64,000 bases of DNA, taken from positions 5,146,001 to 5,210,000 of the forward strand of contig OU015569.1 of NCBI GenBank assembly GCA_907165135.1. The letters are read 5' to 3'. Both the position numbers and the translations under genes were made by a program. This document shows positions 56,904-62,405 of the stretch, piece after piece. This DNA is from Oikopleura dioica. Its lineage: Eukaryota; Animalia; Chordata. A model generated the notes under the pieces. It had not been told where the DNA came from. It did not search any database and saw nothing but the letters and a program-made list of their open reading frames with translations. The first letter of the stretch is position 1; each line of letters opens with the position of its first letter.

Positions 56904-57911
56904 ATGGGCGCATACAAGTACATGAACGAAGTTTGGCGCAAGAAGTCTTCGGACACTATGCGATACTTGCAGCGGTAACTTTATATTCACCTTTTTCAGG
57001 GCTTGACCATTTGTTTAAGAATTCGGGTCTGGCAGTACCGAAACCTCAACACCATCCACCGAGCTTCCAAGCCCACTCGACCAGAGAAGGCCCGACGACT
57101 CGGATACAAGGCCACTCAGGGCTTCGTCGTTTACAGGCACAGAGGGTTGCACGGCCTAGCTCAAATTACCTGCGATTAGGATAGCCAAAGAATGAAAACG
57201 GCAAAGAGTTACTCGGAAACACGGGGCGCGTGTCCGGTAACAAACCAGTTCTCGACTCTTCTCCGCGTTTTCTTAGTCTAGTCGCTCTAAAAACTTCTAG
57301 CGCGTGGAGAAACACTATGATTCCAAGTAATGACTCGTCATGAAACGAATTTAGAGACTGGAAAATCCAGCAGAGGGCCTTATGCAAACGTAGACGGACA
57401 CGTTTCTAAACGTCCGCGGTGAATGTTCAACCACTTGACAGAATCAAGATCCGACGAGGTGGACGAAAGAAGCCTGTCCCCAAGGGAGCTACCATGGGTA
57501 AGCCCACCAACATGGGTGTGTTCGTCCAGTTCGCCCGACGACTTCAGTCCGTCGCTGAGGAGCGAGTTGGCCGACACTGCGGCTCTCTCCGAGTCTTGAA
57601 CTCCTACTGGGTTGGTGAAGACTCCACTTACAAGTACTTCGAGGTCATCCTCGTCGACCCCAACCACAACGCCGTCCGAAACAACCCCAAGCTCCAATGG
57701 ATCACTGCTCCAGTGCAGAAGCACCGAGAAATGCGAGGCCTTACCTCCGCTGGCAAGCGATCCCGAGGTGTCGGCAAGGTTAGTTCAATTCAGCTCGTAA
57801 TCGCCCATAACTCGCTTTGCTCAGGGTCACAAGTTCACCAACTCCATCGGTGGCTCCACCCACGCCGCCTGGAAGCGACGAAACACCCTTCGACTCCGAC
57901 GAAAGCGATAA
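56904..57911 (+). CDS. RPL15: 60S ribosomal protein L15
   Basis: [75 protein letters not shown]; 4 exons. Confidence 0.96.
57145..57430 (+). ncRNA. Candidate intronic structured RNA (H/ACA snoRNA-like) in RPL15 intron 2
   Basis: 305-nt GC-AG intron with several hairpins; ANANNA boxes directly after two of them (AAAGAA 57187, ACACTA 57312). Confidence 0.35.
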
Positions 57912-58095
57912 ACTTCCTGTACTTGCCACCTTTGAAGAGTCTCATACTAATCTGCCAGACTTTTACTGTGAGCTCTTTATCGGGAAAAATAAAAGGCGAA
58001 AGGACGCACTTGACGTTAGTGATTATTACGCAATCGATATGCGCATGTTATAAGGCAGGAGGCAACGATCAGTGACTGATCATGGCTAGTTTAGA

Positions 58096-58487
58096 ATGAG
58101 AAAATTATTAGTAACTTTGCGAGCAAGCGGAATTAGAGAGAGGGCCAGGAATTTATCAGAGAAACCGCCGAGAATCCCGATTTATGCAGGTTAGAGAGAT
58201 CAGCTCTTAGCTTAGATTTTATGGTTTCTAGTGGCGAAGGGTCACAATCCTGGGATTTACTTCTCTAAGGCAGGGTCTTGAGAGGGCAACGTCTGCCCTA
58301 CCTCCTAGAATAGAGAATAATGAGTAATCAATCGTACTTAGCTTTAGCTGTTCACGCCTCTCTAAACCCGTACGAGAAAGCGGTCATGAAAGAAGTATCG
58401 GATTTTGATAGTCCAGTTTTTGCGAAAGTGTTGACGGTCGAAGCGGCGAAGAAATTTCTGTCTGAATTCGGCGAGCAAGCAAAGTGA
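58096..58487 (+). CDS. RNase H1 N-terminal hybrid-binding (Cauli_VI-like) domain exons, standalone or fused to OGG1
   Basis: Spliced: MRKLLVTLRASGIRERARNLSEKPPRIPIYAVAKGHNPGIYFSKKAVMKEVSDFDSPVFAKVLTVEAAKKFLSEF. The second intron needs a GC or GG donor. Confidence 0.7.
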
Positions 58488-58523
58488 ACGAGAATTCCTC
58501 TAACACAACTGTTTCATTGCAGA

Positions 58524-60345
58524 ATGATTCGAATTGATCGAAAAGTGCTCGATATTGAAAAGGTACTCCAGATGGGCATGACCTTTCGCTGGCATAAGAA
58601 TGAAGATTCGTGGGAAGGGGTAATTGGGAGGTGAGAATCGACGGTACATTCGTCCGAATTCGGAATTTTCAATTTAAAGGAACGCATTCCGATTGCAACA
58701 AGTTGATGAAGGTATAAAATATTCGCTCCTCAATCTGACAGAGAAAAATAATGATGCACTCATTGAACAACAACTGCGCCAGTTTTTCGACTTGGACAGG
58801 GATTACAAAATTTCGAACGACGATAAAAACATGCTTGAAGCCATCGCAACTTACGATGGTATTCGCCAGCTACAACTGGACCCAGTGGAGACACTATTCA
58901 GCTTTATTTGCTCCAGCAACAACCACATCTCAAGGTTTCGCATAAGTAACAAATGCAATTGTGTGATTAAGATTTAGAATATCTTCCATGATGGTTTACC
59001 TTGGTAGAAAAGGGCCCCTTCTCGTTTGTGGTCCAGTTGACCTTCACCAATTTCCTGATATTAAAACACTTGCTGCGCTAACAGAAAAAGAGGTGAGTTG
59101 GTGATACTGTTTCACTTTTCACAAACGACTATTTGACAGAAAGAAGATTTATTAATAAATTGTAAAGCTACGAGAAGCCCAGTTCGGCTATCGCGCAAAA
59201 TACATCGTGAAAACTGCCCAAATGATTTTGGAGAACGGCGGCGATGCCTGGGTAGAAGAGCTTCAAAATCAGGACTACGATGTGGCAGTGGAAAAGTTGA
59301 TGACTCTTTCTGGAATTGGGCGAAAAGTAGCTGATTGCATCGTTTTATACGGCGTGAGTATTTGCTCTGCGTTTTCACAGAAAGTGTAGAATTAGTCTAC
59401 AAGACTGACAAACATCTCTGAAGAAAATTGTATAATTGAACAGGAATTCTTGGTTTACCGATTTGTAAGCTACGGACATGCTGCAGACGTTCGGTTGTGA
59501 GTGGCGATTTCGCAGTCTATCCATTGCGCTAGGATTAGAATCCAGTAAAAATAGCTCACTAAAGCAAAATAACCTCCATTTTCTATTCATTTGCTCCTGT
59601 TTATAAACACGGGCCGCCTTTTTCATATATGCCCAAACAGCGATCAAGGTCAATATTGTCTACGAATTGATGAACAAAAAATAGAAACTATAAACTCACG
59701 TAAATGATAACTACGTAGATGATAATAACTCTCAAGTCGAGGACCTCCGTTTGTAAAATAGACATTGATTCTTTGAGTGTATTTCTTAATCTCTCGCGGG
59801 TACCTTTTTGATAGCTCTCATCAACAACTATGCATTAATATTGAACGAATATTTTTTAGCTGAATAAGCGCCAGGCGATTCCTCTCGACGTGCATTTGAT
59901 ACGAATCGCGAACCGCGGTAATACAGCTGTAAATTATAATTACTTACTCTCCGTTAGATTACGGTTTGCGCGAAGCTGAGAAGGGCCTCACCCCGGCGCG
60001 ATACAACAGCATTGTCGCGAGATTGAGGGAAACTTGGGGCGAAGATTCGGGGTACGTCCAGGAAAGGGATATCAGCGCCAAGAATTTACTCCTGGATCCT
60101 CTCAAAAAAAAAATTGCAATAATCCCTACAAAAAGACGGTGCTTTTCTTTAAAGAATTGCAGCTTGCGAAGGCGAAGAAAGGAGTAGGAAAGAGGAAGCC
60201 AAAGAAAGAAACGACAGACGTGAAGTTAGAGCAAGAATCCCTCCCTAAAAGGGGCAGACAGTGTGCGAAGAAATCCCCAGAGGAGAAGAAACTAAAGACA
60301 GAAGGAAGACGTAGAAGTAAAAGCAGTCGAAGGCTCGAATTTTAG
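58524..60345 (+). CDS. OGG1: 8-oxoguanine DNA glycosylase
   Basis: GMTFRW, DPVETLFSFICSSNNHISR, FGYRAKYI, HhH GIGRKVADC (catalytic Lys), AIPLDVH (catalytic Asp), WGEDSGYVQ|TVLF, basic tail. Confidence 0.92.
59375..59765 (-). CDS. Nested antisense gene for a single-pass membrane microprotein inside an OGG1 intron
   Basis: ATG 59765; GT-AG introns 59660-59699 (40 nt) and 59529-59573 (45 nt) keep the frame; TM VIIIYVVIIYTILTLIAVWAYM followed by KK. Confidence 0.62.
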
Positions 60346-60473
60346 GCGCTAAGCTTTTACAGTAACTTTTACTGTACAAACGCACTGCCAGCTTTTGACT
60401 GCCATATATTTTTTGAGAAGATACTATTTGTATTTAGCGCTAATTAGGAACTGAAAATTAAGAATTCTTAAAA

Positions 60474-62405
60474 ATGGCGTTGCGGCATAGAACAGACTCG
60501 ATCGCTAAGTACGAAGAAGCCCTGAGCGAAGTTATGGACAAGATCGCGCTCTCGTACGAAGACTTGAATGCAATCAAAGAAAAAGTGAAGGGAGATGTGA
60601 AAGCGAAGCTCGAGAAAGATCAAAGCGGTGTTGGACGAATGTTAAACTCATATGTAGCCAAGATTCCAAATGGGTCCGAGAAGGGCGAATATATTGTTCT
60701 GGGTAGAATAATCGACTTTTCATAATTGCCTATAAATTGTCTTATAGATTTCGGTGGACGATTCTTCAGAGTTGTTTATGTACGTCTGAACCAAGCAAAC
60801 TCAGCAGATGCAGACTTTTCCGTGGCCCCAAAAGGCTCTGGAACAAAACTTGGCAACGATGAAGCAGTATTTATGGAAAGCAAGATCTATCCACTAAGAA
60901 AGAATCAGACCAAAGGTTCAGAAGAGCTTTTTAAACTTATAGCAAAGGTATTTATTCAATTCATATTTTGTTGGAAACGATGAATTAGAGCTGTGCTGAC
61001 TTTTGTAGTCGCTTCAGGCTAGAAGAAAACCCCATCGATATTGTTCTTGTGAATTCGTTTCCCTGCCGCCATGAAAGCATTAATAAAGCAACTCTTATCC
61101 GATGGAACAAGGTAAGGTACTTTTTCGCAAATACCCAACTCGATCTTTTTATAGACCGTTCTGGTAAGGCTGTAGTAATAGACTGCTTACAACTTAACAG
61201 AATATTTTCTTTATGTGAATAGCTAGTCATCGTTCTAGTTTGAGCTTTTTTTATCTATTAAAAGCTGTTTCTAGGGACTGCATCCAAGCGACGGAATCGG
61301 ATTGGACGTTTCTGAGCTTCTTCAAAACGCGATCAGTGATGCAGGCTTACCGCACAAAGTTGTCGCCATTGTGAACGACACCGTTGCCTGCCTCTTTACT
61401 GGTGTTAGCGAAGAAGTCAACACTAAACTTGGTCTGATTATTGGAACTGGCTTCAACTTGTCCTTCTTGCGGACTGAAGAGCAGACACAAGCTGTTAATG
61501 CTGAAATGGGCAGTTTCGGTGACGATGGCGAGCTAGACGAGTATCTAACGAGCTTCGACAAGGATATCGTCAACGCTGGTTATATGCCTAATCCGGGGAA
61601 GCAAGTGATCGAGAAGCTGGTTTCGGGAACTTACTTGCCAGAAATCTTCAGAATCATGGTCAAGCACTTCGTCGACGAAGGACTTATGTTTAACGGCGTT
61701 TCATCCGACCAAATTGACAGAGTGGGAGGAATTCCAGGCAGTTTCCTTCCACAGATTATTAGAGCCGGCACCCAAGGTAAACAAATGATTTTCGTATGTG
61801 CGATAAAAGAAATTGACTAGGCTTAAACCACGTGCAGGATGTTTTGATCAACATCGACCTTTGTGGAATGTACGCCGATGCGGAAGCCTGTCTTTCTATC
61901 GCAAAGATGCTCACACATAGAGCTGCTGGACTTGTCGCCGCTTGCCTCGCTGGAATCATCGAAGTCTCAAACTACTCAAAGCACAGTATTAACATTTGCG
62001 TAGGAATGGTTAACATAAGCAATAATAACTTAAACTCTCCATAAGTCAAACAGCTTATGGTCAAACCGAACAAAGACGGATCGTTCTACAAAAGCCACCC
62101 ATTACTAGCTTCCTCTATTCAAGAAATGACCCAAGAGTTATTAGATGGGCACGAGGTAAATACCAATTTAGTAACTTGTTAATTAACTTGCTAGCACCAC
62201 ATCGGCCACAAGATACAGGTACCCGTCATTGAGTGTTACTTAACATTAGTTTGCCATGCTCGTTGCGAGTCTAACTTAGCTCAGACGGTGTCTATCATTT
62301 ATTGATTTCAACATAACTATTCAGGTGACGTTCCGAACATCATACGACGGCAGCGCGAAAGGCGCCGCTTTCCTCGCTGCTGCCAACGTCGCCGCAAATC
62401 AATAG
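60474..62405 (+). CDS. Hexokinase (single-domain, about 50 kDa, divergent)
   Basis: KMLNSY-like segment, DFGG, SFPC, VAIVNDTVACL, GLIIGTGFN, NAEMGSFG, PGKQVIEKLVSGTYL, DGSFYKSHP, DGSAKGAA. Confidence 0.9.

Follow-up and report, generated by a model that had tools for sequence, protein, structure and literature searches.

Is the RNase H1-type hybrid-binding domain (HBD) encoded next to an 8-oxoguanine glycosylase gene (OGG1) in Oikopleura dioica a part of the glycosylase, or is it a protein of its own that is made from the same transcript? The question is raised by a locus in contig OU015569.1 of assembly GCA_907165135.1, of which positions 5,146,001 to 5,210,000 were analyzed (64,000 nucleotides (nt), hereafter called the window; all coordinates are counted from its first letter). 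Two tightly packed genes of the + strand, the HBD gene followed by OGG1, fill 58096-60345. From the sequence alone, an earlier note had proposed either a glycosylase fused to the HBD or a standalone domain co-transcribed with OGG1, with trans-splicing of the spliced leader at the same AG giving plain OGG1.

The best explanation, to which we give somewhat more than even credence, is a conserved, leader-capped two-cistron unit that encodes an HBD microprotein and OGG1 and whose spacer is an optional mini-intron. The first frame would be translated into a protein of 79 amino acids (aa), with a basic, presequence-like leader and a divergent HBD but no nuclease domain, and the second into an OGG1 that is predicted to be catalytically intact. 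The spacer of 36-42 nt, which runs from a GTGAA(A/C) donor where the first frame ends to an acceptor one base before the OGG1 ATG, would be either kept or excised. Since both fates of the spacer give two proteins in sister lineages, two separate proteins would be the ancestral and main products, and OGG1 may be translated either by re-initiation on the two-cistron RNA or from a monocistronic RNA to which the leader has been trans-spliced at the acceptor of the spacer. In the lineage of the window, where the donor is in phase 2, excision would instead yield a leader-HBD-OGG1 fusion, which is probably a minor, lineage-specific isoform; that it is produced there at an appreciable level is possible, at a little less than an even chance. 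What is new here is the behavior of the spacer at the RNA level and its phase shift between lineages, the HBD gene itself being already annotated publicly.

Co-Transcription of the HBD Gene and OGG1 in Relatives

The window was compared with eight orthologous genomic loci (L001-L005, L011, L012, and L013, the last being the public Bergen O. dioica assembly) and with five spliced transcript contigs that bear on co-transcription, namely L006 and L008 (JGI), L009 and L010 (Logan), and L007. The O. dioica spliced leader, whose 3' end reads ..TCTAACAG, is joined directly to TTTAGAATG in L006, L008, and L010. L006 and L010, which represent one lineage, start with the 3' part of this leader joined to TTTAGA-ATG and continue with a 90-aa HBD frame that has its own TAG, the retained spacer of 41-42 nt, and an intron-free OGG1 whose reading frame differs from that of the HBD. 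The contig of a Bergen-like lineage, L009, is without exactly 46 nt (GTGAAAATTAGG...TTTGAAG) of the genomic loci L001 and L002, and because this gap fits GT...AG boundaries exactly, the spacer is a genuine GT-AG intron in that lineage. After the excision, the HBD frame ends ..LERE-TGA and its TGA overlaps the ATG of OGG1 (ATGA, L009:150-170), leaving two separate proteins; such an overlap is reminiscent of coupled termination and re-initiation. Both cistrons are thus found on one transcript in L006, L009, and L010.

L008 is of a different form. This cDNA contig looks full-length: its first part (L008:1-250) has a remnant of template switching and all 40 nt of the leader, identical in sequence to the leader in PMC6883708, and HBD exon 1 is spliced to OGG1 exon 2, out of frame, so that the HBD domain exons and OGG1 exon 1 are skipped. 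This form is probably a non-productive exon skipping. Because the splice runs across both genes, the HBD gene and OGG1 share one pre-mRNA.

Co-transcription of a standalone domain, the second of the two possibilities raised by the earlier note, therefore finds support in relatives, in RNAs that carry the leader, the HBD stop, and spliced OGG1 together (L006 and L010) and in the two separate genes of the Bergen genome. Operons of O. dioica have been recognized by an intercistronic gap of at most 60 bp, with a median of 31 (PMC7986045), and the stop-to-ATG gap of the window, 36 nt, lies within this criterion. The locus resembles the spliced-leader operons of this species in its gap, in the 40-nt leader on the first cistron (as seen in relatives), and in its conserved gene order. 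It is unlike a textbook operon of this kind in that the spacer is kept in otherwise mature RNA or is cis-spliced, and in that OGG1 carries no leader in the O. dioica-like contigs. A spacer with these fates in a chordate "operon" bears on how downstream cistrons are expressed in O. dioica.

Several observations weigh against the two-cistron unit as described above. In none of the O. dioica-like contigs (L006, L008, L009, and L010) was a leader found at the acceptor of OGG1. All four cross the boundary between the HBD gene and OGG1 leaderless, three of them across the acceptor itself and L008 by skipping it. Because of this, the locus is a poor fit to an operon that is simply resolved by trans-splicing, and the translation of OGG1 is left unexplained. 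The trans-splicing at the OGG1 acceptor that the earlier note had suggested has a counterpart only in L007, from a more distant larvacean (its OGG1 is 42% identical), where the leader is joined 27 nt before the OGG1 ATG. The contigs are, moreover, assemblies, which reveal the existence of a form but give no measure of its abundance. Three raw RNA runs labeled as the same species proved to be Bergen-like (their loose-end consensus matches L013); they are 90-95% like the window in the 3' untranslated region (UTR) of the gene for ribosomal protein eL15 (RPL15) only, and have no depth over 58000-60450. Finally, the protein that was folded for the structural comparison reported below is the L006 orthologue; about 7 of its 56 core residues are different in the window protein.

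The Spacer and Its Phase in the Lineage of the Window

In the window, the 39-nt spacer (58484-58522, + strand) is a candidate facultative mini-intron, homologous to the 46-nt spacer excised in L009. It has a donor AAA/GTGAAC in phase 2, a CTAAC motif, and an acceptor TTGCAG one base before the OGG1 ATG (58524), and the HBD stop TGA (58485-58487) sits within the donor. The segment is thus present as the earlier note had read it (GTGAAC..CTAAC..TTGCAG), and its computed removal deletes the TGA and joins AA/A-ATG in frame with OGG1, giving a leader-HBD-OGG1 protein of 423 aa. A second in-frame GT (TCT/GTCTGA), which would define a 63-nt intron, was set aside because it is a poor donor and no transcript supports it.

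This in-frame junction is not conserved: the relatives have their donor in phase 1 or have none. The distance that separates the donor from the conserved GAATTY codons is 25, 28, or 31 nt among the relatives (phase 1) and 14 nt in the window (phase 2); the donor of the window is in phase 2 because the HBD tail is 11 nt shorter. A GTGAAA donor in phase 1 was found in eight loci or contigs and in the transcript L009, and L003 and L004 have lost the donor GT altogether. As an in-frame join is possible only in the lineage of the window, the fusion cannot be a conserved function. A word search with a peptide centered on the proposed junction returned four proteins, all from marine metagenome contigs, and nothing from the lineage of the window, which the protein collection does not seem to include; those four, with other members of their clusters, led to the eight genomic loci. 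The lineage of the window is represented in a plankton metatranscriptome, there with contigs only at 58033-58264 and at the start of the hexokinase gene downstream, none of them spanning 58483/58523.

The alternative that survives best is that the 39-nt segment is regularly spliced in the lineage of the window and that the 423-aa leader-HBD-OGG1 protein is a functional and substantial isoform. Such a glycosylase would have gained a module that binds nucleic acids and perhaps a leader for organelle targeting, and plain OGG1 would be made via the spliced leader at the same AG. We consider this alternative rather unlikely. The predicted junction is in frame and the stop is removed, but a junction would be in frame by chance in 1 case in 3. 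In the sister lineage represented by L009, GT-AG splicing of the homologous spacer is proven; the donor of the window is weaker than the GAG/GTGAAA excised there, because it has no G at position -1, and the L006/L010 lineage has GTGAAA yet retains the spacer in two independent contigs. A length of 39 nt is within the size range of introns at this locus, a 40-nt intron of OGG1 (59918-59957) being confirmed by homology, and the CTAAC motif and the pyrimidine-rich acceptor also speak for excision. A fusion would also remove the need to translate a second cistron and could supply a leader to an OGG1 frame that begins directly at OGG_N, without an N-terminal targeting extension of its own.

Against a regularly made fusion, no relative can form it, and an HBD-OGG1 protein was not found elsewhere. 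Among the best 120 of 521 OGG1 relatives, none had PF01693, the Pfam family of the HBD, and OGG domains were found in 0 of the 57 nearest HBD relatives, 21 of which have RNase_H; as a partial test of absence, this survey agrees with the statement of the earlier note that no OGG1 of this architecture was known to it. An exhaustive search of representative sequences with the HBD protein gave only 59 matches; besides the Oikopleura orthologues, most of these contain between two and six repeats of the HBD. One 720-aa protein (P0131) that was placed in the 57-aa HBD cluster of P0004 has no visible resemblance to the HBD, and its membership is probably a clustering or look-up artefact.

An upstream cis donor and the spliced leader could compete for one AG. 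That a gene fusion has been caught at birth here, with the mini-intron excised and the leader-HBD-OGG1 protein made in the lineage of the window, is a tentative reading that we place slightly on the doubtful side of even. If it is true, an 11-nt change in the tail of the HBD gene turned a two-cistron RNA with a spliced spacer into a single reading frame, and the product would be the first 8-oxoguanine glycosylase with an RNase H1-type duplex-binding module. The phase difference between lineages is a natural experiment on the passage from operon to fusion gene, in which a splice that gives two proteins in one cryptic species would give a single one in another. Should no fusion be made, the locus is nonetheless a conserved two-cistron unit with good documentation, largely covered by existing annotation.

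Identity of the Hybrid-Binding Domain

The two-cistron explanation assigns a protein of its own to the upstream frame. The window HBD protein matched Pfam PF01693 (Cauli_VI/RNase H1 N-terminal) with 30.5 bits, above the cutoff of 21 (E 4.2e-7), over positions 2-44 of the 44 positions of the profile, and its orthologue gave 30.3 bits. Among solved structures, the best sequence match was the N-domain of yeast RNase H1 (1qhk), gapless over 44 residues, and no gaps are needed to align the family profile to the human HBD (3bsu). The gapless alignment given by the earlier note is matched by both structures, and the profile and structure searches it had proposed gave concordant results. An AlphaFold model of the L006 orthologue, built from 49 sequences, has a beta-beta-alpha-beta-alpha core with a pLDDT of 81-90. 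In Foldseek, 3bsu_A was the first match of this model (probability 1.00, target TM 0.89, rmsd 0.8 Å, 45 columns). The HBD of the window thus shares its sequence family, its fold, and a basic leader directly before the domain with the HBDs of human and yeast RNase H1 (3BSU, 1QHK).

Unlike RNase H1, the HBD gene of the window has no RNase H catalytic domain: the frame ends 8 residues past the HBD and is followed by OGG1, in line with the earlier note, which had seen no RNase H domain there. The Oikopleura domain also departs from that of RNase H1 at residues that contact nucleic acid in the human protein. By gapless alignment to the 3bsu HBD, the position of human W43 is Lys in every Oikopleura lineage; in the 44 nearest non-Oikopleura relatives, it is aromatic or His in 38 and Lys in 0. 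The position of human K59 is Ala in all Oikopleura lineages and K or R in 38 of the same 44. The equivalents of Y29, F58, and K60 are kept and F61 is replaced by Val, so that the full set of DNA-strand contact residues (W43, F58, K59, K60) together with Y29 is not retained. Substitution of both W43 and K59 had been anticipated by the earlier note. As W43A and KK59/60AA abolish hybrid-specific binding by the human HBD (PMC10639055), the predicted ligand of the Oikopleura domain may differ from an RNA:DNA hybrid.

Conservation of the Locus

The order RPL15 - HBD gene - OGG1 was found in all eight genomic loci, in L013 also with hexokinase downstream, and the short spacer between the HBD gene and OGG1 is kept in each of them, which extends to other Oikopleura lineages the pairing that the earlier note had seen in one. 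In the Bergen genome (GCA_000209535.1, FN653020.1), the annotation gives separate genes, 36 nt apart and lying between RPL15 and hexokinase, to a "Ribonuclease H1 N-terminal domain-containing protein" of 85 aa and to an OGG1 of 374 aa. Both genes, their order, and the 36-nt gap are those of the window, whose lineage differs from Bergen in that the HBD tail and the OGG1 N-terminus are shorter, an additional GC-AG intron is present, and the spacer donor is in frame.

Between the window and its relatives, the HBD core has a dS of 0.9-1.7, a dN of 0.02-0.06, and a dN/dS of 0.02-0.04. A dS of this size (about 1 or more) marks the lineage of the window as very divergent. The HBD is a real protein-coding gene, since its core is under strong purifying selection. 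That an HBD without a nuclease has been kept beside OGG1 and co-transcribed with it across deeply diverged Oikopleura suggests a functional link between a reader of duplexes or hybrids and oxidative base repair.

The same figures bear on a second alternative, in which the upstream frame is mainly a regulatory upstream open reading frame (uORF) that throttles OGG1 translation, for example via the ATGA overlap, and its protein is unimportant. Stop/start overlaps of the form ATGA are typical of the coupling of termination and re-initiation. The upstream frame does precede OGG1 on one RNA in four of four contigs, three of which hold the full OGG1 frame, and the excised form (L009) has the ATGA overlap. 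Yet a purely regulatory frame would not show such amino-acid constraint, with a dN/dS of 0.02-0.04 (at a dS near saturation), and its HBD is recognizable and, in the orthologue model, confidently folded; we therefore regard this alternative as improbable and retain a two-cistron unit in which both frames encode proteins as the preferred explanation.

Gene Models of the HBD Gene and OGG1

By homology to the relatives, the upstream cistron has a candidate trans-splice acceptor GGCTAG at 58084-58089 (+ strand), and its mature RNA is predicted to start at 58090 (TTTAGA-ATG) behind the spliced leader; TGGCTAGTTTAGAATGAGA at this acceptor is kept in all relatives. The coding part lies on the + strand in three small exons, which were found with their Arg-rich leader and domain peptide where the earlier note had placed them. 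Exon 1 (58096-58189) encodes the leader MRKLLVTLRASGIRERARNLSEKPPRIPIYA and ends in phase 1. It is followed by intron 1 (58190-58231, GT-AG, 42 nt), whose homologue is present in the genomic relatives and spliced out in L006 and L010, and by exon 2 (58232-58269), which encodes VAKGHNPGIYFSK and is conserved in relatives. Intron 2 (58270-58376, GC-AG, 107 nt) is specific to the lineage of the window. Exon 3 (58377-58487) includes the stop TGA and would end at 58483 if the spacer were spliced. The product has 79 aa plus the stop (an 80-residue frame). Its leader, conserved as coding in relatives, has eight basic (Lys/Arg) and two acidic residues among the first 30, the first acidic one at position 15, and could conceivably be a mitochondrial presequence.

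Intron 2 is missing from all eight orthologous genomic loci, which run ..TTCTCNAAG/AAAGCGG.. uninterrupted, and the junction of exons 2 and 3 (..FSK/KAV..) is thereby confirmed independently. We infer the removal of intron 2 from the strong purifying selection on exon 3. The intron is either a gain specific to this lineage or was lost in common by all the relatives; in view of the idea of a mobile-element insertion, a second copy was sought, and none was found within the window.

A contig of the same lineage from an oligo-dT plankton metatranscriptome (58033-58264, 232 nt, depth 2) follows the genome colinearly, retaining intron 1, and also covers sequence upstream of the leader acceptor. Because it holds both, this contig is derived from pre-mRNA or from DNA carry-over.

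The weakest alternative, that the two are independent neighbor genes and that chimeric assembly, contaminating genomic DNA, or a deletion variant of the genome accounts for the joint contigs, could draw on the low coverage of the contigs and on the intron-1-retaining contig 58033-58264, which shows that DNA or pre-mRNA occurs in such data, but it is very improbable given four independent contigs from different projects with all OGG1 introns removed, three of them starting with the spliced leader, and given that the gap in L009 coincides exactly with GT...AG.

The second cistron of the unit, the OGG1 coding region (58524-60345, + strand), encodes 344 aa and was delimited by tblastn with the transcript-derived orthologue P0005, which confirmed every junction of its seven exons (58524-58630, 58680-58934, 58978-59092, 59168-59353, 59860-59917, 59958-60061, and 60136-60345). 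OGG_N matches exon 1 of the window OGG1, and both OGG_N and HhH-GPD were found on the orthologue. Human K249 and D268 are matched in the OGG1 orthologue, and the motifs GIGRKVADC and PLDVH are present in the window OGG1, whose C-terminal tail is rich in Lys/Arg. OGG_N and HhH-GPD, the equivalents of the catalytic K249 and D268, and a basic C-terminal tail are thus shared with human OGG1 (1KO9). Unlike in the human protein, the frame of the window has no N-terminal extension, and a leader could be obtained only from the upstream cistron, by the putative splice.

A 30-nt OGG1 intron at 58712-58741 was considered and rejected, as the orthologues align to this segment, which is in frame and free of stops; because the segment is coding, OGG1 has 344 aa and the putative fusion 423 aa. 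The last OGG1 intron (60062-60135, 74 nt) has non-canonical GA-AG ends, and its junction (..GYVQ/TVLFF..) is supported by the alignment to P0005. The sole long intron (59354-59859, 506 nt) contains a minus-strand ORF of 92 codons at 59375-59653.

Neighboring Genes

The gene upstream of the HBD gene, RPL15, lies at 57419-57910. The Bergen-like RNA runs place the polyadenylation of its mRNA about 70 nt past the stop, poly(A) loose ends being found behind 57979, and the spliced-leader acceptor of the HBD gene lies about 100 nt further downstream of this poly(A) site. The hexokinase gene downstream of OGG1 (ATG at 60474) is trans-spliced to the spliced leader at the AG 60461-60462: in a metatranscriptome contig of the same lineage as the window, the leader (..TTTCGATTGTCTAAC) is joined to this gene at 60461/2.

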